Translations under genes and position numbers: made by a program
The notes under the pieces: model-generated
The model's input: the letters and a program-made list of their open reading frames with translations, nothing else
Database searches by the model: none
Told to the model about the DNA's origin: nothing
Source: Piromyces finnis finn
Taxonomy: Eukaryota > Fungi > Neocallimastigomycota
NCBI GenBank assembly: GCA_002104945.1
Contig: MCFH01000001.1
Coordinates: forward strand, 2,046,001 to 2,110,000
Reading direction: 5' to 3'
Length of the DNA: 64,000 bases
In this document: piece after piece, positions 4,301 through 48,192 of the stretch
Numbering within the stretch: position 1 is the stretch's first letter
Layout: each line of letters starts with the position of its first letter

Positions 4301-4431
4301 GCCTTTTTTTAATAATGTAAAAGAAAAAAAAAACAATCGATATTAACATTAATAATTTATTATGATAATTATTTTAGGTTAAAATAGTAAATTTATAATA
4401 GAATTAAGATAAATAAATTAATAAAGAGAAA

Positions 4432-7220
4432 ATGACTGACGCTGAAGTTAAAACCGAAACTCAAGTTAACGAAGCTATCGTTGAAAAACAAGAAGAAAAG
4501 GCTGTTGAAAGTAGGGATATTTTATAAAAATTAAAATAAATTTAAATGATAAAAAATATATTTATAAAAAATATTTGTCATATATTGTATTAAAATTTTT
4601 TATTTATAGTTCCAAAAACCAACCCATGGAAGAAAACCGAAGTAAAAGAAACTGAAAATATTAACAAGTCATTATGGCCTTCTCTTGGTAAGGATGGTAA
4701 GGATTCTCCAGTTAAGGAAAATAGCAAAAAACAAAAGAAATCCGAAGAAAAGGAAGGTTCTGGAAAGAAGGGTAAAAAGAATGGTAAGAAGGAATGGGTT
4801 ACACTCGATGTTGATATTAAATTTAAGGGTAGTAATAATAACCATAGAGAAAAGAAAGACAAAAAGAAGAATGGTAAAAGTTTGACTTTTCTAATAATTA
4901 TTCAATATATATATTTGTAATTTCATAATGTATATATACGTTAATACGTATAAATAATTTTCTAATTATTTTTATATTTCACTGTATAAATTATCAAATA
5001 AATTTAATGATATATCATTTTTAATGATATTAAAATTATAAAGGTAAGAATTCCAAGAAACACGAAAAAGATAGCAGAAGAAGACAAAGAAAGAGAGATT
5101 CAAAGAAGAATAAGTTCAACCCAGAATTAAACTACGGATACGAATTAACTAGTATGAACGGTTTCTCACAAATTGTTCCAGAAGGTATTTTCATTACTTC
5201 AAACCCAGAAAACTTAGATGTTAATTATCTCAATTTAGACTCAGTAAGAACTTACATCAAGTTACAAATTAAGTATTACTTCAGTATTCAAAACTTATGT
5301 AAGGATATTTTCTTAAGAAAACAAATGGATGAAGAAGGTTGGATTGATTTAGAAATTATTAAGGGTTTCAAGCGTGTTGAAGGTTTATTAAAGTTAGGTC
5401 AAAATGTTGATAGAAATATTAAGGAAAACGAAAAGAAGAAGGATAAGAAGAAGGATAAGAAAGAAAAGGAAGAAGCTAAGAAAGAAGAAAAGGAAGAAAG
5501 TAAGGAAGAATTCGAATATGATGATGCTTGGTGTAACCAATTCATTTTATCCGCTATTAAGGATATTGATACCGTTGAAGTTAAGGAAGAAAAGGAAAAT
5601 GTCTACTTACGTAAGAAGGAAGACTGGAAATTCTGGATTAACCCACTCGAAAGCATCATTACTACTATGAAGGAATTATCTAGCAACGAAGAAGAAGAAG
5701 AACAATCAAAGCCAGAAATTAAGATTGAAGACACTGATGCTCCAAAGGACCGTGAAGTTGAAACTAATGAAAATGAAGAAGGATGGACCACTTACAATGG
5801 TCGTCGTCGTCAAAAGAAGAAGGCTGATGGTGAAAGCAAGCCAAGTCACGATGGTGACGATCTCTTCCAATTTGATGATGAAGAAGAATGGGGAAGTAGT
5901 CCAAGATTCCAAGATGATCCAGAAGAAAAACCAGAAGACAAGGCTGAAAAGAAGGACGATGAAGATTATGAAATTGATGATGATATGTTACAAGGTTTAA
6001 TGATTGTTACTCAAAGACGTAAGCAACAATCCAACCCACCAAACTCATTATCTCAAGGTGATCTTCCACCAAGAAAGCACAACACTGTTGCTTATGACCG
6101 TTACAAGAACAATGAAAGCTTAAATGAAATGATTAACGAAGGTCTTTACTACTATGAACACAACATGAAGGAAAGTAACAGATTAAGTATGATGACATCA
6201 AAGATTGAAGTTGTTGATGAAGAAGAATTCGAAAAATTAAATGGAGAAGAAACTTCCAAGAAGAACAAGAAGAAGCACGGAAAGAAGAATAAGCGTAACA
6301 ATGAAAAGAGTCACTCTGAATCTCAACCAAAGAATATTAAGAAGGGTCCAAGAACTAAGCGTTTCTTCCCATCTGAAACTCCAGTTAGTAGCTCTAAATT
6401 CTTAGGTACTACTCCAGGTCCAATTGGTTTCTTAATCGTTAACAATGATCAAGTTTCCCACTTTAAGAATGGTAAGAGAGGAGGTTCCAACAACATGCCA
6501 TCTCCATCTACTTCTATTCCAATTAACGGCTCATTCAAATCTGGTTCAATGAGCGGTACTGGTCTTGATATTCCAAGACGTTCATCTTATCGCTATGGTA
6601 GTTACGCCAGTAGTTACGCCAGCAGTTATGGACAAAGCTTCAAGGGTGGTCACAGTTATGGTAGTAGTTATGGTACTAGTTTCAAGGAATTCCCAATGTT
6701 CCAACATCCAAGTTACGAATTATTAAAGGACAATGGTTTCATTCAACACAAGTACTACAAGTACCATGCTAAGGCCTTAAAGGAACGTAAGAACCAAGGT
6801 ATTGGTCAATCTCAAGAAATGAACACTTTATTCCGTTTCTGGAGTCACTTCCTTCGTGAACAATTTAACAGAAGAATGTATGAAGAATTCAAGAAGCTTG
6901 CTATTGAAGATGCTGAAGGTGGTTACAGATATGGTTTAGAATGCTTATTCCGTTTCTATTCCTACGGTTTAGAAATTCATTTCAGCAAGGATATCTTTGA
7001 AGATTTCCAAGAAATGACTGTTGAAGATTACTGCAAGAAGGGTGAATTATATGGACTTGAAAAGTTCTGGGCTTACTTATACTACCGTAAAGATAAGAAG
7101 AATAGACCATTAGATGATAAAATCCGTGATGAATTAAAGGAAGCCTTAAAAATATATAAGACTATTGATGATTTCAGAAAGGCTAACAAGGAAAAGGAAG
7201 AAAAGAAGAAGAATGAGTAA
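4432..7220 (+). CDS. LARP1: La-related protein 1 (La motif plus DM15 repeats); exons ~4432-4510, 4610-4873, 5044-7220
   Basis: La motif ([38 protein letters not shown]) and DM15 region ([12 protein letters not shown]...[14 protein letters not shown]...[18 protein letters not shown]). GT-AG introns join a PKTNPW-containing N-terminus in frame. Confidence 0.93.
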
Positions 7221-27257: not shown

Positions 27258-28703
27258 ATGGATGGAATTTTATATGATTATGCAAATAAGGCATTTGAAA
27301 AATTTCCTTATACCGATAATTCACAAAATACTCCAGAATATGTTTTAGAACAACTTAAAAAAGCACAAGAAAAAAATTATTTCGTAACTCCAGGACATAG
27401 TGGATATTTTGACTGGATTTTTAGTAAGGGAACAAATATGACTTGTTATGCAGAGTATTTAGCAGGCCTTTCAAAAGAAGATTATGTAGGAAGTAAAATT
27501 GATCTTGTTAGAACAATTATATACTCATGTGCTAAACCACTTCAATCACCGTTCTTTTACTGGACCTTATTATTGCTTATTTTACACAAATTTAATTTTA
27601 AAAAACCAGTAATGAAAATTATTTTAGCTCACTATGTATTACGTGCTATTGGTGATATATTAGATCAATTAAGTGGGTTAATGCCACTTTACTTTAGTCT
27701 TGATGAAAATGGTAATTGCCGTAATAGTGTTGGAGCCGCAGAACAACATCCATTTAGATGGCTATTAACAAGGCAAATTGGTTGTATATTCTGGTATTTT
27801 GGTGAAATATGCGGTGATTGGTATCCATTACTTAGAACAAGAGCTGTTGCAAGAGATCAAAAATCAATGATTTGGGTATATACATCTTGTGTATTGTTTA
27901 ATTTATCAAAAATTACTTTGATATTTATTCAATTCTTCTTTTTGCCTGTAACTAAATTATACAAGTATAATGAGGAAACCAACTCATATTTATATGATAA
28001 CGATGAAAAAAATAAATTCTACAATAAATATTGGATTAATATTGGTGTCATTATTTTATGCTCTGTATTATACGATATTACAGTATTCTTTGTATTGAAA
28101 AGACAAATTTTCAGTAAAACAAAGAGTGACTTTGGATTCTTAAAGAAATTTAGAACCATTTCAGAATACAGAATTATCGTTTCCGTATTAATTTGTATCT
28201 TTTTATTACCAGTTATATTGGCTACTATTGTAATAAAATTCTACTTCTATAATAAAAAGGACATGAAGAATTTAAATTTCTCATTTGAAGATATTAGAAC
28301 ATTAATTGTTAATGTTCAATACTTTATGATTTTCATTGATCAAATCATGTTATTCCGTTCAAGAGATGACTCTAGTATGGGTGAAACTACTAGTATGACT
28401 ACTGGAGGCGGTTATAATACTAATAACTTTAGTAGTAATAATTTTAGTAGTAACAACTTTAGTAGTAATAACTCTAACCAATATGTTAAACCATACAACA
28501 TTGACTCTAAGTTATATTACACCAACTTGAATAGTTTAAATAGTAATATGGCACAAAGCAATACAACACAATTCGGTTATTCAAATAATAATAATAGTAA
28601 CTTTGGAAGAAATAATAGCAACTATTCAGGTAGAAATAATACAATAGCAAATTATGATGACTATAATGGAACGGCTAATGAATGGAATTATTTAAGAAAA
28701 TAA
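27258..28703 (+). CDS. Orphan 7-TM (GPCR-like) membrane protein, paralog A, intronless, with N/S-rich C-terminal tail
   Basis: 481-aa ORF with about seven hydrophobic segments (FFYWTLLLLIL; IILAHYVLRAIG; IGCIFWYFGEICGDWYPLLR; IWVYTSCVLFNLSKITLIF; YWINIGVIILCSVLYDITVFFVL; IIVSVLICIFLLPVILATIVI; TLIVNVQYFMIFIDQIMLF). Clear paralog at 46724-48192. Confidence 0.8.
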   Translation: MDGILYDYANKAFEKFPYTDNSQNTPEYVLEQLKKAQEKNYFVTPGHSGYFDWIFSKGTNMTCYAEYLAGLSKEDYVGSKIDLVRTIIYSCAKPLQSPFFYWTLLLLILHKFNFKKPVMKIILAHYVLRAIGDILDQLSGLMPLYFSLDENGNCRNSVGAAEQHPFRWLLTRQIGCIFWYFGEICGDWYPLLRTRAVARDQKSMIWVYTSCVLFNLSKITLIFIQFFFLPVTKLYKYNEETNSYLYDNDEKNKFYNKYWINIGVIILCSVLYDITVFFVLKRQIFSKTKSDFGFLKKFRTISEYRIIVSVLICIFLLPVILATIVIKFYFYNKKDMKNLNFSFEDIRTLIVNVQYFMIFIDQIMLFRSRDDSSMGETTSMTTGGGYNTNNFSSNNFSSNNFSSNNSNQYVKPYNIDSKLYYTNLNSLNSNMAQSNTTQFGYSNNNNSNFGRNNSNYSGRNNTIANYDDYNGTANEWNYLRK

Positions 28704-29953
28704 ATTTAAAATTGTATATAAAAAATATTGTAAAAAAAATTTAAAAAAAAAAAAAATCAAATAATCCATTTTTTAGAACTTTTCCATTAATTATAATATT
28801 CATTAAAATTTTTAAATTAAGTAATATGTAAAATTAGAAATTAATAATAGTAATATATGTTATATATATATATTTTTTTCCATTTAAAAAAAATAAATAG
28901 TAATAAAAAAAAAATAAAGATAAAAAAAAATAGTAAAAGAATAACATTTTTGTATTAATATTAATATCTTTGAAAGTATTAATTATTAATAAAATGATTT
29001 TTATTCATACTATAATTATAACAACAAAAAATAACCATATCAAATTAAAAAAAAAAAAAAAAAAAAAAAAATTTTGTAAATAGATGGTTATTAAATATAA
29101 ATTTTATATATAATGAAAAAAATAAAAAATGAAATTAGAAATCCAGCAATAATAATGTACATTTTAAAATAATAAATAATATAAAATAAAAAAAATTAAA
29201 AACAAAATTAAAAATAATAAATTTTAAAAATTTAAAGGTGTGTGAATTCATTAAAAGAATTTATAATAAAAAAAAAAAAAATAATATAGGGATAAAGGTA
29301 TAAGTTATAAAAAAAAAAAATTTTGTAAAAAAAAAAAAAAGACATTATAGCAAAAATAAAACTTCTTTCCCCGAGCAAATCATTATTGAATATTTCTTTT
29401 CTGAAACAGGATATAGAAAAAGATAAATATTTGATTAGGAGTGATAATTTTAAAAGTGTTTGTATAGGTATACATACTATATTTTTCTTTCACCTACAAT
29501 TTATTTTAAATATTAGTTGTTTTTTTTTTTTTTACCACCACTTTATAAAATTTACAATTTTAAGTTTGATTCTGTAGTATTCAATATTGTTTTTTTTTAA
29601 GAATATCTTTGATTTTGCTTTTTATTTTATACTTTACTTATTTAGACATTTATTAAATATGTTGTTTACTTATTTTCTTAGTTCTTTGCACCTTTTACTT
29701 TTTATTTAATTAGTTAGGAAGATTTGTTTTCAGTTAGCTTATTGTTCATTTAAATCTTGAATTTGTTATGGGTTCACATTACTTTTTTTCATTTATTTCA
29801 TTTATCTTAGAAGATTACGTCAAAAGTAAAATAAAATATAAGAATATAAAATATAAATGCTTAATATTTTTGTCGATTAAAAGAAATAATGAATACTATT
29901 TATTATAAATATAATTATAATAATTTATAAATTCAACTGTTAATACAACATGC

Positions 29954-32077
29954 TTATTAAAATATAACTATTTATTAAATATTAAAAAGCATAATAAATT
30001 ATATTTTTAATATTTATATTATTCAATCAGTCAAATAATGAATAAAAATGTATAAATAATGAAATTGAACATTATGTAATTACAATGGCAATATACAAAG
30101 CAATATTGTTATGTTATGTATGTAAATATATTTTTCACTCTGTTTTTATAATAAATAATAATATTATTATTATTTTATTCTTATTATTTAATAGAATAGA
30201 ATTAATGTAATCAAAATAATAATTAAGAAATTCATGCATATAAAATATTTTATAAACGAACATTTAAAATTTATAATATTATTTTTTATTTATTTATTCG
30301 TTTATTTTTTTGTGAATGATAAGAAAAATAAAATACATATACATATTCATAGTATAAATTGATAACGGATTGGTAGTTATATTACAACTTTTTAACTACT
30401 TCTTCTGTTATCTTATATTGTTTTATCTCGACAGCTATTGTACGAGCTTTAACAATATCTACTAGTTTTATTAATTTATTTTAAGTTATTTTATAATTTT
30501 AATAGTTTTATTATTTTAATAATATTTATATAGAATAATAACACCAGATTTATTCTATAAAATATTATTTATTATTAACACAATAATTACAAATTAGACA
30601 AGTTTAATTTCGTTTTTATATTTTCTTTTATTTATTGTTCTTACGCTCTTTTTAACAATAATTTTTATTATATAAAAACTTATTTTTTGTCTTTTAAATA
30701 TTATTATGTATTCACTAATTAATTATATTAACTATTATTAAAATTTAACTTATTATTAGTAATCTAAGTCTTCTCATTTTCTACTAAAAATTATTATTAT
30801 TCTTTATAATAAAAATTATTTTTATAATTTAACCCAATCAAATATATAAATTTATAAAATATTTGATTTTATGTAAATTATATTTTTATAATAAACTATA
30901 TAAAATTATTTAATAATTATTTTATAATAAAAATTTCTACTAATATCAAATGTATAATATATTTATAATTATTATTTATCAAAATATATATTTCGTTCCA
31001 GTTTTTATCCTGGTTGTTAAGGCGTTTCCTTAGCATACATAAGGCTTCTGGTTCGACCCCGCAGATGTCAGTGCCTGTGGATTTTCCCACTGGGTTTGCC
31101 ATGGGTTGGGTTATGATATTCAGGTAAGTATAAATGAACTTTCTAATTTACTACTATGATAATAACACTCGTCTAGCCGGCCTGAGAGGGTCTAGTGTAC
31201 ATGGTACATTCCAAATTAGAACTTAATAAGTGGTGACTTAGGCTATGCCAAAAACACATAATATTCCTTAATCAATTTAAGTGTAAACATTAGGGGGCGG
31301 TTGACACGTGATCAAATTGACTATAAGAGGCTTAGCATTGTAGTTGTGAAATATCGTACAACGACATGCATCTAATGTACATGGATTAAGTGAGCGTCGA
31401 AGCTGAAGAAACAGTATGACAGACCAGGAGGGTCACAACCACCTAGCAATAGGAATGAGCCAACGTTTCTCTAAGAACCACCATTGGAGCTAACTCTGAT
31501 CGATGGGAGAAATGCACTCGGAAGTTAAATATATAATGAACTATATAAATAAAATATAATAAAATAAAAGTTAACCATTATAAAATTAATTATAATATTA
31601 AATAAATATAATCATTGTAATTTATTTCATTTACTTAAAAGTAAATATTTTTTTTTTTTTTTGATTATTATATATATATAATAAATATAATAAATTCAAT
31701 TAATACTTTAATTTACTATTTTATTTATAATAATTTATAATATAAAATAAATTATATTTAAAATTAAAGCAAAAACTTTTTATTGTCTTTCGTCTTTAAT
31801 AAATGAAAATGATGGTGGTTAAGTTTAAACCATTAAATTACTAATGAATAAATATTAAATAAATAAATAAGTAAATAAATAAATAAGTATAAATTAGAAT
31901 TTTTGATCAAAATAAATTTTTATTATCTCTAAATTTTATTTTTAATTTCGTAGTATTATTTATTTAAAATACTAAGAAATAAGAAGTAAAAGAAAAAAGA
32001 AAGAAAAGAAAAAAGAAAGAAAAGAAAAAAGAAGTAAAAGAAAAAAGAAAGAAAAGAAAAAAGAAAGAAAAGAAGAA
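29954..32077 (+). repeat. Upstream flank 'U' of the Rpn repeat unit, copy 1 (interrupted by the 1.17-kb insertion)
   Basis: Near-identical to 38013-38967; parts recur at 40541-40750 and, inverted, at 41992-42385. Confidence 0.9.
30360..31530 (+). mobile_element. Non-autonomous retroposon (SINE-like) insertion, ~1.17 kb, with 5-bp TSD taaat
   Basis: Absent from sister copies (empty site agtataaat|atataatgaac at ~38445-38465 and ~40631-40650). Contains a tRNA-like segment (31011-31066), and 31392-31431 matches the LINE 3' region (rc of 33660-33699) at 36/40 nt. Ends in ggaagttaa, versus ggaagtcaa for the LINE. Confidence 0.7.
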
Positions 32078-33376
32078 ATGGACTATCTAAGTTATTGTAA
32101 TAGAAGAGTCATTACTATAAAACCAACTGTCAATATTGTTTTTAAAAGACTATTTGGTAATGAAAAGAATAAAGATATTTTGGTTCATTTTTTAAATAGT
32201 GTATTGAAGTATTATGGTCATTCTGATTTTAATGTTAACAATGTTAAATTTATTGATGAAAAATTGAGGGCAGATGATTTAGAAGAAAATTTCCCAAATG
32301 CTGATATATTAGTAAGTAAATTTAAAAGATTAACAAAAGAGAATGACGAAGAACTCGTAAATATAGAAATTCATGTTTCAAATGTAAGTAGCAGGTTATA
32401 TCGATCTGAATTTTATGCTTCAAGATTAATGACTCAATCTGTATTTAAAGGACAGAAATATGGAAATATTCCAGAAATCATTATGCTTAATATATTAGAT
32501 TATATAATGTTTGACGATAGAATCGGCTATAGATACTTTCCTAGAAATGGTGTAGCTTTTTATAAAGGAAAGTTTTATCAAAATGTCAATGAAAAGTTAT
32601 ACGACAAAAAAATGAACATTCTCACTGACAAAAATGGTAATGATATAATAATGGATAATGACGATTTTGATTTTAATTGTCAATTATCAACAATTCACTT
32701 TATTGAATTACCTAAATTTAAAACTAAGAATGAAAACAATAATGACAATAATGTTAACAACAATGATATTTTAGATAATTCATTAAATAATGATAACAAA
32801 GATGATGATAATAGCGATGAAGACTTAAATCTATGGATCCAATTTTTAAATAATCCAAATGATCCAATATTCAGAAAAGAAGACACAAAAGATATATACA
32901 AAAAAGCAAGATTTGAATTATTATTTTTACAAGATGATGAAAAATTTGAAAAAGAATATTGGTATAGAATAGATTCAATAATAACAGAAAAATCAATTCG
33001 AGAGCATGATAAAAGAAAATATTTAAAAGAAGGAAGAGAAGAAGGAGAAGAAATTGAAGAAAAGAAAGGAATAATAAAAGGAAGAAAAGAAGGAGAAGAA
33101 ATTGGAATAAGAAAAAGTCAAATTAAAACTACATTTAAATTATTCCATTCAAATTTAGATTCATCTTTTATTAAAACATTATCTGAACTTCCAGAAAATG
33201 AAATAAACATTATTGATGAATTCTTAAAGAAATCTGAACGTAATGCTACGGATTTAGCCGAAAAATTAAATATTGATGCCAATTTTATTTATGAAACTTG
33301 TGATTCTTTTAAACTTTCCTATAATACATCTAATGAAGATGATGAAAGTAAAAATAGTAAAAAAATAAAAATTTAA
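32078..33376 (+). CDS. Rpn-family recombination-promoting nuclease / PD-(D/E)XK_2 putative transposase, copy 1
   Basis: Intronless 432 aa. NIVFKRLFGNEKNKDILVHFLNSVL, ADILV...VNIEIH, RSEFYASRL..Q..FKGQKY...IIMLNILDY, IHFIELPKF, LWIQFL and C-terminal EGREEG repeats are hallmark motifs of bacterial Rpn/YhgA-like proteins. Confidence 0.88.
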   Translation: MDYLSYCNRRVITIKPTVNIVFKRLFGNEKNKDILVHFLNSVLKYYGHSDFNVNNVKFIDEKLRADDLEENFPNADILVSKFKRLTKENDEELVNIEIHVSNVSSRLYRSEFYASRLMTQSVFKGQKYGNIPEIIMLNILDYIMFDDRIGYRYFPRNGVAFYKGKFYQNVNEKLYDKKMNILTDKNGNDIIMDNDDFDFNCQLSTIHFIELPKFKTKNENNNDNNVNNNDILDNSLNNDNKDDDNSDEDLNLWIQFLNNPNDPIFRKEDTKDIYKKARFELLFLQDDEKFEKEYWYRIDSIITEKSIREHDKRKYLKEGREEGEEIEEKKGIIKGRKEGEEIGIRKSQIKTTFKLFHSNLDSSFIKTLSELPENEINIIDEFLKKSERNATDLAEKLNIDANFIYETCDSFKLSYNTSNEDDESKNSKKIKI

Positions 33377-33581
33377 TATTCTTAATTTTTATTATTAATT
33401 TAATTAAGATTATAATACATGTAATATATAAAATTAAAAATAAAAATAAAAATAAAAATAAAAAAAAAAAAAAAAAATGTTTAAATAAACACAAATTAAT
33501 AAAAATTGGGTATAATGTATTCTAGTAATTTTAATTAAAGTAAGAAAGCCACTATTATACTAAAGTATAATAATTGTAATT

Positions 33582-36500
33582 GACTTCCAATGGGACACTG
33601 AGCCGAAGATCAAAATTTTATCATTGGACAAAATTATGATCTCCATTGGTTGCGCCGGTCCTCCTGGCCTGTCTTACTGTTTCTTCAGCATTGACGCTCT
33701 TGGATGTTGCTTCAAATCTTTTGAACATTGACCATTGCTGGCCAATAGCAAAAGGCATGATTTTGGTTAGAAGTTCCGCTGTTACTGTCAAGAATGGTGT
33801 TCCTTCGTTAGTGCCATATTGAATCTGACACTTGCAAAGTTCTTTCCATTCCCTTGAATTGTAATTGATATTGTTAAAACTTCTTCCCCCAAGAAGGAAT
33901 TTAAATATTTTACTGCACACACTAGAATAATCATACACATTAATATTCACCGGATTATTAGAACTATCACTATCATTAACTAAATTACTATCTAAATTAG
34001 AATTATTATCTTCACTATTGCTATCATTACTAATATTATTATTTCTATTACTACTATTGTTATTATTACTATTGTTATTATTACTATTGTTATTATTACT
34101 ATTGTTATTATTACTATTGTTATTATTACTATTGTTATTATTACTATTGTTATTATTATTATTGTTATTATTATTATTGTTATTATTACTATTAATGTTA
34201 TTACTATCTCTACTGATATTAATATTTTCATTATTATTGATAGGACTATTGGAATTACGTTGACTGAAAAAATTTAATAGCTGGACTATAGAATCATAAT
34301 GTTTAGTACGGATATCTCTAAATGTTGGAAAATCTAATAACCAATGCTTAATACTTTGAACACCACACTTGCAACATGGACAGTAGTTAGGACAAACTGG
34401 ATCAACAAATTTAGTAGCTTTTGCAACTCTAGAATCCAATTTGTATCCGCTTTTTGCTTTCAATAACCAGTAGAAGCCATAGGCAAACTCTGGGTATTCA
34501 TAACATAATTTGATAAAATCTTTAGTTTCAATAAATTTATTATCATCATAATATTGCGCTTTGATTAAATTCCCTTTGAGATCTTTCCAATAAAAGTTTT
34601 TAACTGCTTTACCATCTCCATGTTTCTTTAATTTTTTATCAAGTGTCCTACTTGATTTGCACCATGTATATTTTCTAAATTTAAGAATGTAATTGACAAG
34701 GTATGAGATAATACAATTGGAGTTTTTCCATTTGTTAAAACATCTAACCTGAGCTAACGCACATTTGGCTGACAATGGAGGAATATTCAAATCTTTTGAG
34801 ATAGAGTATAAAGATATAAACGATATAGCTTTATGAACTCCTGCAACCCAATCGTATTCCTATGTTAACATGCTTCTGAGCAATTCTAGACCTAGCTTTG
34901 TTGGATCCAAGTAATGGTGTAAAGTATGAAACTCTGCTAATTACTTGTGAGTTAAGTACTAGCTTTTTGAAAGGAATAGGAATATTAGGATTTATTAAGA
35001 ATTTACTGACTGAAAAGAGTCCTTTCAAAACTTTGTTATTAAGAGTTTTAATAATTGGTTTAAGGGACAGATTCTTATCAAACGGAACACCAAGATAAGT
35101 GTAGCAATCAGTAGTTGGAATGGGTTTTCCTGCTAAATAAAATGTTGGATCTTTCTTGTTCTGATTTTCTATTGATTCAGGACGAACCACCATCATTGAA
35201 CATTTCTGAATACCAATTTCCATTTCATTATACAAAGCCCATTCATCAACTCTTTTTAGCATCTTTTTTAAGCATCCTCATGATGAAGCACAAATAACTA
35301 TATCATCTGCAAAAAGCCCACCACAGCATCGAGTGTCACCTAAATTGACTCCTAGATCTTCGCACTCTCTAAATATATCATTAATAAAGAGATTAAAGAG
35401 AATAGGAGAAAGTGGGCAACCTTGACGGACTCCTTTCTTCACATCAAAAGATTTCGAGAATTGTCCATCTAATTTGACATTAGCCTTAGATGTTAAATAT
35501 AAATTTTTGATAAATTGTAAACTCTTATCTCGGATTCCTAAACAATCTATATCATAAATTTTTTCTTTTTTAAATCTCTTATACAACTTCATTTTGATTT
35601 TTCGAAGATTAAAAATTTGTTGTGAAATATGAAATGAAAACTTTATAACATTATTTGCTGAGGTAATACTGAGCTCGTCTGCAATTGAAAAAGCAGTTGA
35701 AGTAAACTCTTTGGAAAGTTCATCTGTAGAAACATTAGGATCGTTGAGTTTTGCTGAAAGTATTTGGAATTTATTATGACTGAGAATAGATTCCTTTTCC
35801 TCAATACATTTTAATCTATTCCATTTCAGAATTTTCTTAGGAACATTAAAGTCATTAGAAAAATCTTCCATAGGAATAATTTTACCATTAATAAGAAGTG
35901 GCTTATGGTCTGATACAGGATAAAAATTATTTATAAATGATCCTGAGTGAATAAGATTTTTCATCTTCGAATTGATAAGAGCATGATCAATGTCGGAAGA
36001 TTGATCACCACGAGTCCAAGAGATAGTAGACCCTCTAAGCGGAAGAATTTCCCAATCTCTTAATCCATTAGTTGGTAACCAGTTGGATAATTTTACTTTA
36101 GACATATTAAAATCACCAACAAGAATCGATGGATGGGATGAATGAGTTTGTAACCACAAGCGAACTTCTAACTTTGCATGATCAACATAGATGTTGTGAT
36201 GACTATGAGGCATATAAACATTTCCAATCGAACATTTGAATCTATTCCAAAGACTAAAAGTATAAATAGAAATAATATACTTTCCAGAGAAGTTTTCAAA
36301 TGAGACTTGACACGAATTGTGAAAACCTAAATATAAGCCTCTCATTACAGGAACTGATTCATCAGCTTTCTTGAAAAAGGGCCTATAGTTTCGTAAAGTA
36401 ACACGACAAGGATACTCTGTATTCGATCCAGAACCATTACCAGTTTCTTGAAAACATAAAAATAATGGTTTGAAAACAACTGTGAAATAGCTAATACTAT

Positions 36501-38012
36501 CTCTCTTTTCGTGATTCCACCCATTGGTGTTCCAACTAAGACAAAAAGAAAAGTTATCAGGCTTGTTGGATGAGGAAGAATCGTTGCTATTATTATTATT
36601 ATTAAAGTCATCATTATTAATGGATGATACATCAAAGGAATAAGTTGAACTATTACTAGATGGCTGTGAAACTGAAGAACTATCAACTATTGAACTGTTA
36701 TCAGAGTTGATAAAACTATTAGAATTAATTGTTGAATGTTGAGATTGAAATTGTGTTTGTTGTAGATCAGGAATATTTTCATAATGAAAAACTTGTTGAA
36801 GATCTTGTTGAAGATCGGATTGTTGATGAGATTGTTGAACTGATTGTTGAATTGATTGTTGAATAGAATGTTAACATTTATTAGAAACTAAAATTTTAAG
36901 TTTGAGTGAGGAAAAAGTGTATTTGTGATTCCTTCTACTACGAGCTGAAAAGGAAATTGAACTGAAAGTTTCTTCTTTAATATGTGTAAGATTTTAATAC
37001 AATCTTTCGATGAACCATGAACCTTGACTAAGAAAAAGTGATCATTGAAAGTCTGAAAATATTTAACACTAATAACTGAATTAAATTTATCTTCCAGAAT
37101 AACCTCGAGTTTTTCCCATAGCATATTAACTGACCATGATCAAATACCACGGATAAAGAAGGAGCGAATATCATCTAAGGGGATACCATAAGACCGGGTA
37201 CCATGTCTAATATAATTCTTATCTTTAATATAAAGGACTGACATGATAATTGATTCTAATTAAAAAATATTGAATATAAAATAAATACTAATAAAAATTA
37301 TAAATATAACGTATATGGAAAAAAAATCTGTCTCTCTCTTCTTAAAAGTACTGAATAGTACAAAAATTGTTACGATGCTTTGATTAAAGTTTCTTTTTTT
37401 AAATTCTAGTTGTAAATTTTCTTTAAAAATTTTAGTTTTGGTTTGTTGTTAGTAAATTCGATTCACTTTTTGACACTAAATTATTTGACTTTACTTTTCA
37501 TTAAATATTTAAATTAGTAAATAAGAAATTTAAATCAAGAATTTTGATACCGGAAAGCTTGTGAATAGTATTTTTACATGATGTAGAGTGAATCAGTCTC
37601 TTACGAGAAACAACACAATAATAGCTACATGAATATAAAAATACAAAGCAAATGCTAAAGTTGACTACATTAGATTCTTACAAGAGAAGAGTAGTACTAC
37701 ATGAATACATGAATAAAAGAAAAAATACAGCAACAAAATGTATTATTCTTCTAATTAAATATTATACAAACTTACTTAAATACCAAACATTCAACTTATC
37801 CATCAATACTTAAATTCGATGGGTAAATGTTTTTTTAATCTCTTAGTATCATGTACTTAGTCCTTATAAATTTCCTTTAAAGACTAACCAAGTATCCATT
37901 GTGCAATATTTGGATTTTTTCTACTTTTTCAGTACCATGAGCATGAATAGAGCCTCTTGAAAAATTTCATTTATTAAATAAATGAAAGTACGTTCCCAAG
38001 GGATGGGATATG
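33582..38012 (-). mobile_element. Decayed non-LTR retrotransposon (LINE) with ORF1 remnant, APE endonuclease, truncated RT and C-terminal zinc knuckle
   Basis: APE motifs SWNTNG, FQET, ILVGDFN, SDIDHAL, VSDHKPL. RT motifs GVRQGCPLSPILFNL, LFADD, YTYLGV. C-terminal CPCCKC...IKHWLL. ORF2 is broken into at least three ORFs and lacks the N-terminal RT subdomains. The 5' boundary is set where U-flank homology resumes. Confidence 0.92.
34050..34195. repeat. In-frame 15-nt tandem repeat (actattgttattatt)n encoding NNNSN runs within LINE ORF2
   Basis: At least six consecutive units are visible. Confidence 0.85.
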
Positions 38013-38967
38013 TTTATTAAAATATAACTATTTATTAAATATTAAAAAGCATAATAAATTATATTTTTAATATTTATATTATTCAATCGGTCGAATGATG
38101 AATAAAAATGTATAAATATGATCCTGTAAAGTACGATCGATGTGTATAAATAATGAAATTGAACATTATGTAATTACAATGGCAATATACAAAGCAATAT
38201 TGTTATGTTATGTATTTAAATATATTTTTCACTCTGTTTTTATAATAAATAATAATATTATTATTATTTTATTCTTAATATTTAATAGAATAGAATTAAT
38301 GTAATCAAAATAATAATTAATAAATGCATGCATATAAAATATTTTATAAACGAACATTTAAAATTTATAATATTATTTTTTATTTATTTATTCGTTTATT
38401 ATTTTGTGAATGATAAGAAAAATAAAATACATATACATATTCATAGTATAAATATATAATGAACTATATAAATAAAATATAATAAAATAAAAGTTAACCA
38501 TTATAAAATTAATTATAATACTAAATAAATATAATCATTGTAATTTATTTCATTTACTTAAAAGTAAATATTTTTTTTTTTTTCGATTATTATATATATA
38601 TAATAAATATAATAAATTCAATTAATACTTTAATTTACTATTTTATTTATAATAATTTATAATATAAAATAAATTATATTTAAAATTAAAGCAAAAACTT
38701 TTTATTGTCTTTCGTCTTTAATCAATGAAAATGATGGTGGTTAAGTTTAAACCAATAAATTACTAATGAATAAATATTAAATAAATAAATAAGTAAATAA
38801 ATAAATAAGTATAAATTAGAATTTTTGATCAAAATAAATTTTTATTATCTCTAAATTTTATTTTTAATTTCGTAGTATTATTTATTTAAAATACTAAGAA
38901 ATAAGAAGTAAAAGAAAAAAGAAAGAAAAGAAAAAAGAAAGAAAAGAAAAAAGAAAGAATAGAAGAA

Positions 38968-40266
38968 ATGGACTATCTAAGTTATTGTAATAGAAGAGTC
39001 ATTACTATAAAACCAACTGTCAATATTGTTTTTAAAAGACTATTTGGTAATGAAAAGAATAAAGATATTTTGGTTCATTTTTTAAATAGTGTATTGAAGT
39101 ATTATGGTCATTCTGATTTTAATGTTAACAATGTTAAATTTATTGATGAAAAATTGAGGGCAGATGATTTAGAAGAAAATTTCCCAAATGCTGATATATT
39201 AGTAAGTAAATTTAAAAGATTAACAAAAGAGAATGACGAAGAACTCGTAAATATAGAAATTCATGTTTCAAATGTAAGTAGCAGGTTATATCGATCTGAA
39301 TTTTATGCTTCAAGATTAATGACTCAATCTGTATTTAAAGGACAGAAATATGGAAATATTCCAGAAATCATTATGCTTAATATATTAGATTATATAATGT
39401 TTGACGATAGAATCGGCTATAGATACTTTCCTAGAAATGGTGTAGCTTTTTATAAAGGAAAGTTTTATCAAAATGTCAATGAAAAGTTATACGACAAAAA
39501 AATGAACATTCTCACTGACAAAAATGGTAATGATATAATAATGGATAATGACGATTTTGATTTTAATTGTCAATTATCAACAATTCACTTTATTGAATTA
39601 CCTAAATTTAAAACTAAGAATGAAAACAATAATGACAATAATGTTAACAACAATGATATTTTAGATAATTCATTAAATAATGATAATAAAGATGATGATA
39701 ATAGCGATGAAGACTTAAATCTATGGATCCAATTTTTAAATAATCCAAATGATCCAATATTCAGAAAAGAAGACACAAAAGATATATACAAAAAAGCAAG
39801 ATTTGAATTATTATTTTTACAAGATGATGAAAAATTTGAAAAAGAATATTGGTATAGAATAGATTCAATAATAACAGAAAAATCAATTCGAGAGTATGAT
39901 AAAAGAAAATATTTAAAAGAAGGAAGAGAAGAAGGAGAAGAAATTGAAGAAAAGAAAGGAATAATAAAAGGAAGAAAAGAAGGAGAAGAAATTGGAATAA
40001 GAAAAAGTCAAATTAAAACTACATTTAAATTATTCCATTCAAATTTAGATTCATCTTTTATTAAAACATTATCTGAACTTCCAGAAAATGAAATAAACAT
40101 TATTGATGAATTCTTAAAGGAATCTGAACGTAATGCTACGTATTTAGCCGAAAAATTAAATATTGATGCCAATTTTATTTATGAAACTTGTGATTCTTTT
40201 AAACTTTCCTATAATACATCTAATGAAGATGATGAAAGTAAAAATAGTAAAAAAATAAAAATTTAA
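38968..40266 (+). CDS. Rpn-family PD-(D/E)XK_2 nuclease, copy 2
   Basis: 432 aa; differs from copy 1 at three visible residues (REH/REY, KKSE/KESE, ATD/ATY). Confidence 0.88.
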   Translation: MDYLSYCNRRVITIKPTVNIVFKRLFGNEKNKDILVHFLNSVLKYYGHSDFNVNNVKFIDEKLRADDLEENFPNADILVSKFKRLTKENDEELVNIEIHVSNVSSRLYRSEFYASRLMTQSVFKGQKYGNIPEIIMLNILDYIMFDDRIGYRYFPRNGVAFYKGKFYQNVNEKLYDKKMNILTDKNGNDIIMDNDDFDFNCQLSTIHFIELPKFKTKNENNNDNNVNNNDILDNSLNNDNKDDDNSDEDLNLWIQFLNNPNDPIFRKEDTKDIYKKARFELLFLQDDEKFEKEYWYRIDSIITEKSIREYDKRKYLKEGREEGEEIEEKKGIIKGRKEGEEIGIRKSQIKTTFKLFHSNLDSSFIKTLSELPENEINIIDEFLKESERNATYLAEKLNIDANFIYETCDSFKLSYNTSNEDDESKNSKKIKI

Positions 40267-40466
40267 TATTCTTAATTTTTATTATTAATTTAATTAAGAT
40301 TATAATACATGTAATATATAAAATTAAAAATAAAAATAAAAATAAAAATAAAAAAAAAAAAATGTTTAAATAAACACAAATTAATAAAAATTGGGTATAA
40401 TGTATTCTAGTAATTTTAATTAAAGTAAGAAAGCCACTATTATACTAAAGTATAATAATTGTAATT

Positions 40467-40540
40467 GACTTCCAATGGGACACTGAGCCGAAGATCAAAA
40501 TTTTATCATTGGACAAAATTATGATCTCCATTGGTTGCGC
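40467..40540 (-). mobile_element. 74-nt 3'-terminal fragment of the LINE, duplicated together with the Rpn downstream flank
   Basis: Identical to 33582-33655, then switches abruptly into U-flank sequence at 40541. Confidence 0.9.
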
Positions 40541-40788
40541 ACATTTAAAATTTATAATATTATTTTTTATTTATTTATTCGTTTATTTTTTTGTGAATGA
40601 TAAGAAAAATAAAATACATATACATATTCATAGTATAAATATATAATGAACTATATAAATAAAATATAATAAAATAAAAGTTAACCATTATAAAATTAAT
40701 TATAATATTAAATAAATATAATCATTGTAATTTATTTCATTTACTTTTTTGATTAAATTTTTATTTTTTTATTATTTTTACTTTCATC

Positions 40789-41991
40789 TTATTCATTAGA
40801 TGTATTATAGGAAAGTTTAAAAGAATCACAAATTTCATAAATATATTTTGTATCAATATTTAATTTTTCTGCTAAATCCGTAGCATTACGTTCAGATTTC
40901 TTTAAGAATTCATCAATAATGTTTATTTCATTTTCTGGAAGTTCAGATAATTTTTTAATAAGAGATAAATCTAAATTTGAATGGAAATATTCAAATGTAG
41001 TTTTAATTTGTCTTTTTCTTATTCCAATTTTTCTTCCTTCTTCTCTTCCTTTTCTCCAATAATACTCTAGAGTTGATTTTTCTGTTATTATTGAATCTAT
41101 TCTATACCAATATTCTTTTTCAAATTTTTCATCATCTTGTAAAAATAATAATTCAAATCTTGCTTTTTTGTATATATCTTTTGTGTCTTCTTTTCTGAAT
41201 ATTGGATCATTTGGATTATTTAAAAATTGGATCCATAGATTTAAGTCTTCATCGCTATTATCATCATCTTTGTTATCATTATTTAATGAATTATCTAAAA
41301 TATCATTGTTGTTAACATTATTGTCATTATTGTTTTCATTCTTAGTTTTAAATTTAGGTAATTCAATAAAGTGAATTGTTGATAATTGACAATTAAAATC
41401 AAAATCGTCATTATCCATTATTATATCATTACCATTTTTGTCAGTGAGAATGTTCATTTTTTTGTCGTATAACTTTTCATTGACATTTTGATAAAACTTT
41501 CCTTTATAAAAAGCTACACCATTTCTAGGAAAGTATCTATAGCCGATTCTATCGTCAAACATTATATAATCTAATATATTAAGCATAATGATTTCTGGAA
41601 TATTTCCATATTTTTGTCCTTTAAATACAGATTGAGTCATTAATCTTGAAGCATAAAATTCAGATCGATATAACATACTATTTACATTTGAAACATGAAT
41701 TTCTATATTTACGAGTTCTTCGTCATTCTCTTTTGTTAATCTTTTAAATTTACTTACTAATATATCAGCATTTGGGAAATTTTCTTCTAAATCATCTGCC
41801 CTCAATTTTTCATCAATAAATTTAACATTGTTAACATTAAAATCAGAATGACCATAATACTTCAATACACTATTTAAAAAATGAACCAAAATATCTTTAT
41901 TCTTTTCATTACCAAATAGTCTTTTAAAAACAATATTGACAGTTGGTTTTATAGTAATGACTCTTCTATTACAATAACTTAGATAGTCCAT
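40789..41991 (-). CDS. Rpn-family PD-(D/E)XK_2 nuclease, copy 3 (inverted, divergent C-terminus, premature stop)
   Basis: 400 aa. N-terminal ~300 aa nearly identical to copies 1 and 2 (VNSM vs VSSR). Shorter EGREEG region and a different C-terminal variant. TAA replaces a GAT codon and removes the final ~11-aa ...KKIKI tail. Confidence 0.87.
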   Translation of the reverse strand: MDYLSYCNRRVITIKPTVNIVFKRLFGNEKNKDILVHFLNSVLKYYGHSDFNVNNVKFIDEKLRADDLEENFPNADILVSKFKRLTKENDEELVNIEIHVSNVNSMLYRSEFYASRLMTQSVFKGQKYGNIPEIIMLNILDYIMFDDRIGYRYFPRNGVAFYKGKFYQNVNEKLYDKKMNILTDKNGNDIIMDNDDFDFNCQLSTIHFIELPKFKTKNENNNDNNVNNNDILDNSLNNDNKDDDNSDEDLNLWIQFLNNPNDPIFRKEDTKDIYKKARFELLFLQDDEKFEKEYWYRIDSIITEKSTLEYYWRKGREEGRKIGIRKRQIKTTFEYFHSNLDLSLIKKLSELPENEINIIDEFLKKSERNATDLAEKLNIDTKYIYEICDSFKLSYNTSNE

Positions 41992-43030
41992 TTCTTCTAT
42001 TCTTTCTTTTTTCTTTTCTTTCTTTTTTCTTTTCTTTCTTTTTTCTTTTACTTCTTATTTCTTAGTATTTTAAATAAATAATACTACGAAATTAAAAATA
42101 AAATTTAGAGATAATAAAAATTTATTTTGATCAAAAATTCTAATTTATACTTATTTATTTATTTACTTATTTATTTATTTAATATTTATTCATTAGTAAT
42201 TTAATGGTTTAAACTTAACCACCATCATTTTCATTTATTAAAGACGAAAGACAATAATAAGTTTTTGCTTTAATTTTAAATATAATTTATTTTATATTAT
42301 AAATTATTATAAATAAAATAGTAAATTAAAGTATTAATTGAATTTATTATATTTATTATATATATATAATAATCGAAAAAAAAAAAATCTACATTTATCA
42401 ATTATCAACAGTATTAAAATATTCTTTTTAAATTTTATAATTATTAATATAATTTATTTTAATTGAATATATAAAACTATTATGAAATAATGTATAATGT
42501 ATTAATAAAATATTATTTATTATTATAAAGGATAAAGTAAATATATTTTTTTTATTATTAAGAGTTACTATTATTTGAAAATATAATGGTGGTAACATAT
42601 TAGTCATTGATTTAAATCAATTTTCTTTATGATTACTCGATTGAATAGCTTTACTAATTTTAATGTAATTATAAGATATACTTATTAAGTAATACTAATC
42701 AATAATAAATAATATGATTTAGTGTTTTTCTCTCATTCAATTCCATTAATTTAAAAAATTACCTTAAAAATAAAATATAAGAATATAATATATTTTATTA
42801 TAATTATATAGTACTTTTTTAGATTAAAAGAAATAATGAATACTATTTATATAATTTATTATAGATATAATTATAATAATTTATAAATTCCATTGTTGAT
42901 ATTATATGTTTATTAAATACCATAATCTATTAAAATTAATAATAAAATTAAATATATTTTAACTAATAAAATTTATTTATTTATTTATTTATTTATTTAT
43001 TAATATATATATTTTAACAAAAATTATATA

Positions 43031-46723: not shown

Positions 46724-48192
46724 TTAATAATTCCAATCTTTGTCACTTACTTCACTATATTTATTGTTTTTGAGCATACCAAAGCTATTACTATTTATTG
46801 CTGATCCTGTATAATTATATTGTAACATTCCATTTTGAGCATTACTTGTTAGTGTATTACTACTATTGTTTAAATTACTCAAATTAGAAAAGTATGATTT
46901 TGAATCAAGATTACTTTTTTTGTAATCGTAATTACTTTTTTTAAATGAATAATTACCATTAGTACTGTAATTATTATAATTATTATAGCTAGTAGTACTG
47001 AAATTGTTATGACTATTACTTCCACTATTATTATAAGTTTCAATAGTACTTTCATCTTTTGAACGTAAAAGTAAAATTTGATCAATAAAAATCATGAAAT
47101 ATTGGACATTAGCAATTGTAGTTCTTAAATCTTCAAAATTGAAATCAATATCAGTTTTTTCCTTAATATAGAAGAAGTAATATTTTCCTATGGAAATGAA
47201 TAAAGAGATTGGTAAACCAATGACACCAATAACAGCAGATATGACAATTCTGTATTCTGAAATAGATCTGAATTTCTTCAAGAAACCAAATTCATTTTTA
47301 TTTGTTCTATCGAAAAGTTGTTTCTTTAAAACCATATATACAGTTATATCATAAATTAAAGAACAAGCTATAATGACACATTGCATAATCCAGTAACCGT
47401 TGTAAAATCCATCAACATATACTTTATTGTATACACCTCTTTTTTCCCCTCTGTATATTTTTTTTGGATCCAATGTCCATTGATAGAAGAATACAGCGAT
47501 CTTTGAAAGATTAAATAAACCACATGACATATAAACCCATTTAAGAGTATTTCTATCTCTTGCAACAGCTTTAGTACGAAGCAATGGATACCAATCTCCA
47601 ATAATTTCACCAGCATACCAAAAGAATAAATTTATTTGTCTTGTCATGAAGAATTTTAATGGATATACTTCAGTATAAATAAGACCATCTATACACTTTC
47701 CGTCATTATCATAAGCAAAATAATGTGAAAGAAAACCTCCACCAATAGTATCAATTATATCACCAATAGTTCTATATTATTAATAATAAAAGAATTTAGT
47801 ATTTTATTCATATTTTTAATTAAAACAAATATTTATTTTTCAATTTATTACCTAAATACATAATGTCCTAATACTAATTTCATAACAGGCTTTTGAAAAT
47901 TGAATTTATGAATAATACATAATAATAATGTCCAATAGAAAAAAGATTGATTTACTGGTTTAATAAATGCATTTATAATTGTTCTAATAGTATTGAGAGC
48001 ATTATTTGGAACAGTAATACCTGAGTTTTTATAATAACCAGCCATATATTCTACATAACAATCAAAGTTTGTACCTTTACTAAAAACCCAACCCCAGTAA
48101 CCAGCTTCTTGATCATTTCCGATGAAATACTTTTTTTTTGATTGTATATCATCCCACTGATCATTAGTAAATGTATAATTGTAATAATTCAT
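46724..48192 (-). CDS. Orphan 7-TM (GPCR-like) membrane protein, paralog B; exons 48192-47852 and 47771-46724
   Basis: Shares FSKGTN..CY.EY.AG, FFYWTLLL, KPVMK, GDWYPLLRT, FGFLKKFR.ISEYRI and NVQYFMIFIDQ with paralog A. An 80-nt GT-AG intron splits the Arg codon of HYVFR. Confidence 0.82.

Follow-up and report, generated by a model that had tools for sequence, protein, structure and literature searches.

Bacterial-type Rpn nuclease genes in the anaerobic gut fungus Piromyces finnis: probable descent from one old transfer and local growth by duplication

Rpn proteins are, to our knowledge, known only as bacterial nucleases, toxin-antitoxin and anti-phage modules, and the presence of such genes in a fungus raises the question of how they arrived, how they multiplied and whether they still serve their host. 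The window considered here (the whole stretch of DNA that was analysed, 64,000 nucleotides of a Piromyces finnis contig) contains three intronless PDDEXK_2 (Rpn/YhgA-like) ORFs, at 32078-33376 (+ strand), 38968-40266 (+) and 40789-41991 (-), referred to below as copies 1, 2 and 3. They encode 432, 432 and 400 aa, respectively, and copies 2 and 3 share 99% and 95% protein identity with copy 1. A previous sequence-only reading of the window had described three nearly identical intronless genes and had left the choice between an actively amplifying mobile element and a domesticated defence or genome-diversifying module.

The contig belongs to a fungus and not to a bacterium. Its length is 2.6 Mb and its GC content 17% (15-29% across 2-kb windows), database names assign it to P. 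finnis, and the neighbours of the Rpn ORFs are eukaryotic, including LARP1-like and RasGAP ORFs. Near-identical repeats assemble poorly and the domain is typical of bacteria, which could speak for an assembly artefact or for bacterial contamination, both having been named beforehand as possible refutations. However, these are contradicted by the length of the contig, by its LINEs and eukaryotic genes, by copies that differ at fixed positions, by the presence of both alleles of position 39895 in the independent run X1 and by homologues in four other fungal assemblies. Both possibilities are already close to refuted and receive almost no credence here.

The three ORFs are members of the Rpn/PDDEXK_2 nuclease family. 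Matches to PDDEXK_2 (PF12784) had E-values of about 1e-20 (1e-20 for copy 1, 1.3e-20 for copy 2) and bit scores of 75-78 (cut-off 27.4). Over its whole length the protein can be aligned with 50 or more bacterial members, in which D76 and E97 are conserved, and its structure neighbours in the Atlas were all bacterial Rpn proteins (TM 0.85 by target). Together with the fungal contig, these matches uphold the proposal of bacterial-type Rpn genes in a eukaryotic genome. The AF2 model (pLDDT 77.5) comprises a nuclease core, a 70-residue helix (a single helix spanning residues 288-357) and a helical C-terminus. A Foldseek search of the full model against the PDB gave no match at E <= 0.001, a profile search of PDB sequences returned nothing, and PADLOC defence models gave no match to four family members. 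The additions relative to bacterial Rpn are a conserved insert of ~45 residues in the nuclease domain, Asn/Asp-rich low-complexity stretches and, at the C-terminus, a helical extension of ~60 residues and a basic, NLS-like tail, which reads K-K-I-K in one subclade and P-K-K-R-K-V in the other and by which the protein is predicted to enter the nucleus.

As to the origin of the genes, all fungal-type sequences formed one clade, both in a first tree with 12 of them and in a later one with 26 (SH-aLRT 99 and 100), nested in Clostridia-type Rpn. The clade includes P. finnis, Piromyces sp. E2, Orpinomyces, Anaeromyces robustus and Neocallimastix, as well as rumen-type metagenome members located on contigs of 15-19% GC, one of which adjoins a CotH and chitin-binding gene; some members carry the database name Rpn family. 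The Piromyces sp. E2 gene is readable only with a frameshift, and its two intronless neighbours had no good match near the P. finnis cluster. GC3 of the P. finnis genes is 14%, equal to that of neighbouring host ORFs, and their codon use is host-like. With a single nested clade and a host-like composition, the genes were horizontally acquired from bacteria, as had been suggested, and the phylogeny against bacteria that had been called for thus supports this part of the proposal. A single fungal clade inside Clostridia-type Rpn is also consistent with one ancient transfer and vertical descent thereafter: a Clostridia-type Rpn gene would have passed once, long ago, into the ancestor of today's anaerobic gut fungi, after which vertical inheritance and birth-and-death evolution would have shaped the family.

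The domain has been reported from these fungi before. PDDEXK_2 is one of 40 domains unique to anaerobic fungi in Table S1 of Wang et al. 2019 (PMC6712302), on which its absence from chytrids also rests. The main texts of Murphy et al. 2019 (doi 10.1101/487215) and Ciach et al. 2024 (PMC11291939) do not mention PDDEXK_2 or Rpn, and the part of the Ciach et al. supplement covered here has only a different nuclease family, PDDEXK_3 with AAA_19. The description of the locus as an undescribed system therefore holds in part, since the domain was listed without analysis, but the listing itself and the Rpn names in databases precede it. An 'rpnB' has been annotated in a rust mitochondrial genome in one paper.

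The architecture of the window records how the array grew. Repeat unit 1 (29950-33655) carries an insertion of 1,160 nt, unit 2 occupies 38010-40540, and an inverted unit lies at 40752-42472. The upstream flank of copy 1 begins with segment X and the start of a 240-nt piece, T (29950-30365, +, 90% identity to 38010-38459). T is split by the retroposon-like insertion (30366-31525, assigned to neither strand), which has TAAAT as its target duplication and is absent from copy 2, where the site at ~38449-38459 is empty; the remaining T and a segment named U-rest form the promoter/5' region of copy 1 (31526-32077, +, 97.7% identity to 38449-38967). In the upstream flank of copy 2 (38010-38967, +) the same segments are uninterrupted: X at 38010-38350, T at 38351-38591 and U-rest at 38592-38967. 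Copy 3 has its upstream flank, U-rest and partial T, in inverted orientation (41992-42472, -), forming the inverted repeat I1/I3 at 98% with homology ending at 42472, and beyond it lies a partial X-like segment (42727-42973, +, 73.6% match to 29783-30020). On its other side T forms a conserved 3' flank of ~230 nt (40538-40776, +, the reverse complement relative to copy 3), and T is also found directly 3' of the stop codon at four other Rpn loci. Long genomic matches to X occur at Rpn loci only; U-rest has full-length matches in the genome at the three window copies only, its shorter matches elsewhere being mostly to a common simple repeat within it. The repeat units, an in-frame deletion in copy 3 and uneven divergence along the gene (see below) bear out the tandem duplication, inversion, deletion and sequence exchange that had been read from the locus.

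Downstream of copy 1, a LINE of 4.6 kb (33377-38009, -) with Exo_endo_phos and RVT_1 domains (Pfam matches at 35278-36345), whose ORF2 is split over several frames, abuts the stop codon with its 3' end. A 3' fragment of this LINE, 273 nt long (40267-40540, -, 90% match to 33400-33655), follows the stop codon of copy 2 with an identical junction sequence. The LINE 3' end (524 nt) has at least 40 genomic copies at ~93% identity, all starting exactly at 33377, that is, one base past the Rpn stop codon. The duplicated AT-rich flanks that had been reported are real as a repeat, but the downstream flank D (33377-33655, 40267-40540) is the end of a high-copy LINE and not the gene's own flank. The three retro-type insertions are one LINE, its fragment after copy 2 and the 1.16-kb element with the TAAAT duplication.

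The array in the window was built by a tandem duplication of 8,060 bp and the addition of an inverted copy. At the duplication junction the LINE 5' end is joined to upstream segment X (38009/38010), and the duplicated segment consisted of the gene with the LINE already in place directly behind its stop codon. Alternatively, copy 2 could be a retro-copy made by 3' transduction, in which read-through of the minus-strand LINE into the antisense Rpn unit was followed by reinsertion with a 5' truncation that left 273 nt of the LINE. The youth and abundance of the LINE family would suit this, as would the identical junction between LINE 3' end and stop codon in both copies and the layout of unit 2 (X-T-U-gene-D273), which is what such an event would be expected to leave; yet the left edge at 38010 has no poly(T), no target duplication surrounds 38010-40540, no matching short repeats occur at 38010 and 40540, and neither poly(T) nor a target duplication was found in a search of the unit edges for marks of retro-copying. 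The left edge of unit 2 also falls exactly at the 5' end of the full-length LINE, so that tandem duplication of 8,060 bp and a later deletion give the simpler account, and we regard 3' transduction as very improbable.

A further possibility is a still-active eukaryotic DNA transposon with the Rpn gene as its transposase and X-T-U-gene-T' as a self-moving unit that would explain the dispersed copies. Rpn copies or relics lie on six contigs, the non-coding segments X and T are essentially confined to Rpn-adjacent sites, T lies on one side of copy 3 and a partial inverted T on the other, direct repeats of X enclose the C157 and C178 relics, and 'transposase' is Pfam's historical name for the family. 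However, a search of the Rpn units for terminal inverted repeats (TIRs) with target duplications found none, no unit combines sharp inverted ends with a target duplication, and the shared flanks are explained by tandem and palindromic duplication: large palindromes, for example that of the head-to-head pair (95-97%), account for the T/T' layout, while the X repeats are only 86% alike and fit remnants of a 2.4-kb tandem array. Every intact gene lies inside an 80-kb span, the four intact P. finnis copies placed in the tree group most closely with one another, and in bacteria Rpn is no transposase and the rpn genes lack defined ends. A transposon is thus quite unlikely. The proposal of an actively amplifying mobile element does not stand, the family being old, common to at least four genera of anaerobic fungi and grown by segment duplication; the suggested inspection of flanks and target duplications at other copies gave a LINE tail for D, full-length U-rest in the window only and no target duplication at unit edges. 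The retroelements would be bystanders and the Rpn gene would lack movement of its own. The best explanation, which we consider probable, is that these are fungal nuclear genes derived from one old Clostridia-type Rpn transfer, inherited vertically under birth-and-death evolution and multiplied by local tandem and inverted duplication rather than self-movement.

In P. finnis, five intact Rpn genes were identified within the 80-kb span, together with about six decayed copies, one of which lies ~20 kb beyond it and extends the span to roughly 100 kb. Copies 1 and 2 are intact. In copy 3 a premature TAA costs the last 12 codons and with them the basic tail, and a 60-nt in-frame deletion has removed five four-residue repeat units. 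Divergence of the window copies from the paralogues that lie 70 kb off is 3.4% in the 3'-terminal 261 nt and 10.2% in the nuclease domain (Fisher p = 5e-4), the C-terminal domain being nearly identical between the clusters. The catalytic residues were compared with D11, D63, E82 and Q84 of RpnA. All copies retain D76 and E97. Position 19, which corresponds to RpnA D11 in the catalytic helix, is N in the three window copies and D in the other P. finnis paralogues and the other fungi compared, as in at least 90% of 64 relatives; position 99 is H in the window copies, where Q is near-invariant among relatives. As RpnA D11A is inactive, the D19N change may have attenuated the three window copies.

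Evidence for transcription comes from assembled contigs of four runs in three studies, whose RNA status is an automatic guess combined with inference from depth (contig total per run 20-45 Mb versus a 56-Mb genome). Depth over the coding sequences was 70-800, copy-1-specific letters were included (in contigs of runs X1-X3), and the T at 39895 that distinguishes copy 2 from copy 1 was seen in runs X4 and X1. Copies 1 and 2 therefore appear to be transcribed, whereas copy 3 has almost no reads, with a depth of ~0-30 over its specific stretches. Read alignments ending at 38967 were considered as a possible 5'-UTR splice site, but the alignment method skips repeats there and they are given no weight.

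Selection was assessed by dN/dS (omega). Codon-frequency-aware ML estimates were preferred because the genome is 83% AT, and the NG86 values near 1 (0.84-1.04 among P. finnis paralogues) were set aside. ML values were 0.13-0.25 between species and 0.55-0.77 among P. finnis paralogues, which indicates weak constraint among the recent paralogues. Between copy 1 and a paralogue of 519 aa there are 106 substitutions and also 6 indels, each of a length divisible by three. An open frame was retained in <=0.8% of neutral simulations with AT-biased substitution and in 0.3-4.4% with a uniform spectrum, showing that selection maintains the open frames. The window genes might instead be functionless relics, recently duplicated and drifting, with frames open only through youth. 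An omega near 1 between copies 1 and 3 (0.55-0.95 against other paralogues), D19N and Q99H in all three window copies, the premature stop and little RNA of copy 3 and the many decayed copies elsewhere in the genome would all suit such relics. They are less easily squared with the six in-frame indels of six and the rarity of open frames in the simulations, with the low omega between species, with the high depth of copies 1 and 2 in four runs or with the near-identity of the C-terminal domains between clusters, and we consider relics unlikely, favouring maintained genes.

The hypervariable four-residue-repeat helix, a hallmark of Rpn, survives in the fungal paralogues: two fixed motifs enclose a spacer of 17, 33, 37, 37 and 69 residues in the five intact genes, all differences being multiples of 4. 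Four-amino-acid repeat variation has been described in bacterial Rpn (Zhong et al. 2023, PMC10400941), and such steps among the fungal paralogues suggest that each would pair, through the long C-terminal helix, mainly with itself. A homodimer prediction (residues 270-423, twice) scored 0.43 against 0.26 for the best control, a result from which the method gives no verdict. In bacteria, translation of the small antitoxin RpnS begins inside the gene, at an in-frame start 8-20 residues ahead of the repeats. Since copy 1 has no Met or in-frame ATG after codon 192, an RpnS-type internal antitoxin is not possible there by ordinary initiation, and no conserved Met before the repeats was found in the fungal alignment. 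The C-terminal-only relics (C157, C178 and C1:1.989 Mb) were considered as stand-alone antitoxins and rejected, being broken or without a start.

The protein is a putative Mg-dependent PD-(D/E)XK endonuclease or a DNA-binding derivative of one, with a possible role in defence, genome conflict or recombination. In a more specific scenario, the bacterial toxin-type nuclease would have been kept as a nuclear defence or genome-conflict system in anaerobic gut fungi, partner specificity being set, as in bacteria, by the number of four-residue repeats and whole paralogues replacing the overlapping antitoxin; the three D19N window copies, weakened in catalysis, would regulate the pair with D19 that lies 70 kb off, and gene conversion would keep the C-terminal interaction domains alike. 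The 37-residue spacer of the window copies differs from the 33 and 69 residues of that pair, which speaks against the regulator part, and the scenario as a whole is a long shot. Rpn function in the fungus is, on these sequence data, a lead and not a result. A nuclear-adapted Rpn branch kept across at least four genera would nevertheless be a natural experiment in which the repeat code and the nuclease persist without the overlapping antitoxin gene and the repeat helix still varies between paralogues. It adds a DNA-acting, conflict-type gene to a mostly metabolic list of anaerobic-fungus acquisitions, and offers a worked example of eukaryotic family growth through tandem and palindromic duplication and conversion among retroelements.

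Three known systems invite comparison. With bacterial Rpn (E. coli RpnA-E; Clostridia PDDEXK_2/TIGR01784; Kingston et al. 2017, PMC5350276) the fungal proteins share the order of PD-(D/E)XK core, variable four-residue-repeat helix and helical, HTH-like end, as well as D76 and E97. Bacterial rpn genes have neither inverted terminal repeats nor target duplications and form arrays via duplication (Zhong et al. 2023), and the same applies to the fungal genes. Identity is only ~25-30%, however, and the fungal genes are eukaryotic, nuclear and of host codon use, with the ~45-residue insert, Asn/Asp tracts, ~60 extra C-terminal residues and basic tail, without an in-frame internal start for RpnS in copy 1, and with H, K or Q at position 99 and N for D19 in the window copies; known here from sequence and model, their activity and defence role are putative. 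The other bacterial genes of anaerobic gut fungi (Murphy et al. 2019, Wang et al. 2019, Ciach et al. 2024) resemble Rpn in their bacterial donor, single fungal clade, host-like composition and growth in copy number after transfer, but most of those described are metabolic or plant-cell-wall enzymes, whereas Rpn is a DNA nuclease of a bacterial toxin-antitoxin/anti-phage family. Finally, like the fungal Rpn genes, eukaryotic DNA transposons that encode a PD-(D/E)XK-type nuclease occur as dispersed copies of a nuclease ORF, some with shared non-coding flanks. The fungal Rpn genes differ in having no TIRs with target duplications and no defined ends, and in their intact copies being clustered and mutually closest.

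Three uninterrupted open reading frames (ORFs) of the window matched Pfam PDDEXK_2 (E ~1e-20): Rpn copy 1 at 32078-33376 (plus strand, 432 aa), copy 2 at 38968-40266 (plus strand, 432 aa) and copy 3 at 40789-41991 (minus strand, 400 aa), of which copies 2 and 3 share 99% and 95% identity, respectively, with copy 1. The window occupies 2.046-2.110 Mb on a contig of 2.6 Mb, in a genome of 56 Mb, and has a GC content of 15-29% (2-kb windows). What the sequence-only reading had proposed, namely bacterial-type Rpn genes in a fungal genome, is confirmed. The ORFs around the array are of eukaryotic type, among them a RasGAP and a La + LARP1 HEAT protein. Bacterial contamination of the contig was excluded on the basis of these neighbours and of the base composition of the Rpn genes (GC3 14%), which is the same as that of the neighbouring ORFs. 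For two ORFs flanking the array, at 27258-28703 (481 aa) and 46724-47647 (307 aa), no Pfam match was found.

Word-based searches identified relatives in Piromyces sp. E2, Orpinomyces, Anaeromyces robustus, Neocallimastix and metagenome contigs of 15-19% GC, one of which carries a CotH + chitin-binding gene adjoining the Rpn relative; bacterial matches reached ~25-30% identity at most. In maximum likelihood (ML) trees the fungal-type rows, 12 and then 26, formed a single clade (SH-aLRT 99 and 100) on a long stem within Clostridia-type Rpn sequences, and the horizontal acquisition suspected earlier was borne out by all 26 rows falling into this one clade. The clade splits into two subclades, both of which include Orpinomyces; the four intact genes from P. 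finnis that the tree includes are mutual closest relatives, and the second subclade has no P. finnis member. This topology would fit one old transfer, followed by an early duplication and lineage-specific gain and loss. The window genes belong to an old branch of bacterial Rpn that has become adapted to fungi. PDDEXK_2 has been listed, without discussion, among the 40 Pfam domains unique to anaerobic fungi compared to chytrids (Table S1 in Wang et al. 2019, PMC6712302). The Piromyces sp. E2 homologue (KZ150884.1, 8001-9597) requires a frameshift after the N-terminal motif and before the E-x-Q strand, spanned in the annotation by a short “intron”, and an assembly gap of N is located just upstream; it may be a pseudogene or reflect a sequencing error. 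On one metagenome contig a 60-aa ORF with a weak PDDEXK_2 match (1408-1590), just downstream of a second-subclade gene, may be a tandem remnant.

Self-comparison of the locus delimited unit 1 (29950-33655), unit 2 (38010-40540) and an inverted unit (40752-42472). The stretch 33377-33900 occurs in the genome in at least 40 copies (~93% identity over the 3′ 524 nt; 1,078 first-look candidates), and since all of them start at 33377, one base past the copy-1 stop codon, the shared downstream flank previously attributed to the Rpn gene is instead the 3′ terminus of a young minus-strand LINE (33377-38009), which carries Exo_endo_phos and RVT_1 domains, with ORF2 split into several frames. The LINE family appears to be young and abundant. 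Behind copy 2 only the last 273 nt of the same LINE are present, with a junction identical to that of copy 1. As unit 2 starts, at 38010, exactly at the LINE 5′ end, the most economical history would be an insertion of the LINE behind the Rpn stop codon, a tandem duplication of 29950-38009 (8,060 bp), and a rearrangement that would have joined the second LINE to the inverted copy, with most of that LINE being lost. Neither poly(T) nor short target repeats were found at the unit edges, and 3′ transduction is therefore not supported. Unit 1 also contains an insertion of 1,160 nt (30366-31525), with TAAAT as the target duplication, and the corresponding site is empty in unit 2 (~38449-38459); the tail of this insertion (31345-31486) shows a 94% match to another locus. 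Recent segmental duplication, in a region rich in retroelements, gave rise to the array.

A six-frame search identified ~11 Rpn loci in the genome, of which five are intact genes: the three window copies and, 70 kb upstream, a head-to-head pair (475 and 519 aa) arranged as a palindrome of 95-97% identity. Truncated or stop-filled loci are located at 1.989 Mb of the same contig (C1) and on contigs C157, C174, C178, C24 and C2. One model on the contig of the head-to-head pair (C1, 2008500-2012041) is named “Essential protein Yae1 N-terminal” in the database; this is probably a misnomer, the Yae1_N match being weak (E = 0.024, on the 519-aa gene) and derived from the four-residue G-containing repeats of Rpn. 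A non-coding piece of ~230 nt (T) is found in reverse orientation directly 3′ of the stop codon in copy 3, both genes of the pair, the 1.989-Mb locus and C178, and is the ancestral 3′ flank. Long matches to a second piece (X, ~480 nt) occur at Rpn loci only. On C157, X is present as direct repeats of 520-550 nt (3934-4452 and 6319-6868 of the extracted part), 86% alike and 2,385 nt apart, around a decayed Rpn copy, as if left over from a tandem array with units of 2.4 kb. Sharp inverted ends with a target duplication were found at no Rpn unit, and the possibility of an actively amplifying mobile element is not supported.

The Rpn gene is present in four sequencing runs from three studies. With run contigs placed on 36900-42700, the coding sequences of copies 1 and 2 showed a depth of 70-800, copy-3-specific stretches ~0-30 and two intergenic stretches zero. 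The run contigs hold the copy-1-specific letters 39687C, 39895C, 40120A and 40141G, and also a T at 39895, absent from copy 1. Given this depth pattern and contig totals of 20-45 Mb per run, less than the genome, we infer that the runs, whose label as RNA is itself a guess, represent RNA, and that there is transcription of copies 1 and 2, with copy 3 nearly silent.

The Rpn genes are maintained by selection. ML estimates of dN/dS (F3x4) were 0.13-0.25 between species and 0.55-0.77 among the P. finnis paralogues, for which NG86, unreliable at such base composition, gave 0.65-1.04. Between copy 1 and the 519-aa gene there are 106 substitutions and six indels, none of them frame-shifting, and in neutral simulations the proportion of runs with a frame still open was at most 0.8% when substitution was AT-biased and 0.3-4.4% with a uniform spectrum. 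Divergence between the two clusters was 3.4% in the last 261 nt, compared with 10.2% across the nuclease domain (p = 5e-4), which indicates conversion of the C-terminal domain.

The fungal protein can be aligned with bacterial Rpn over its whole length. In E. coli RpnA, mutation of each of D11, D63, E82 and Q84 abolishes activity. D63 and E82 are conserved as D76 and E97. At the D11 position (fungal position 19) the three window copies all have N, and D is found in both remaining P. finnis genes, in the further fungi compared and in at least 90% of the 64 sequences aligned; at that of Q84 (position 99) the window copies have H and other fungi have Q or K. The window copies may possibly be weakened by D19N. 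The AF2 model (mean pLDDT 77.5) comprises a nuclease core, one helix (288-357) and four short helices, with inserts and tail disordered. The Atlas neighbours of the protein, both by features and by structure, are bacterial Rpn clusters throughout. In copy 1 the insert at residues 148-200 (32519-32677), within the nuclease domain, contains G-Y-R-Y ... F-Y-K-G-K-F-Y, strongly conserved within one fungal subclade; neither bacteria nor the other fungal subclade have this insert, and it is disordered in the model. The basic tail reads K-K-I-K, or P-K-K-R-K-V in the other subclade, and fits a monopartite nuclear localisation signal. The Rpn genes are not a mobile element, and the best reading is that their product would be a nuclear, self-pairing PD-(D/E)XK nuclease or a derivative thereof, with a predicted role in genome defence, conflict or recombination.

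Like the units described here, bacterial rpn genes are without inverted ends and target duplications, and their arrays formed through duplication (Zhong et al. 2023, PMC10400941). A four-residue-repeat helix of variable length is also common to both: in bacteria the repeat number differs between strains and sets which short antitoxin form pairs with which long form (Zhong et al. 2023, PMC10400941), and in the five intact fungal paralogues, with a helix of K/E-E/K-G-x-type units, the spacers between two fixed motifs measure 17, 33, 37, 37 and 69 residues, all differences being multiples of four. Unlike in bacteria, the internal antitoxin gene is not retained, since copy 1 has no in-frame ATG past codon 192 and the fungal alignment no conserved Met before the repeats. 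The fungal proteins further differ from bacterial Rpn in bearing the conserved insert (~residues 148-200), an Asn/Asp-rich tract, ~60 extra C-terminal residues and the basic tail.
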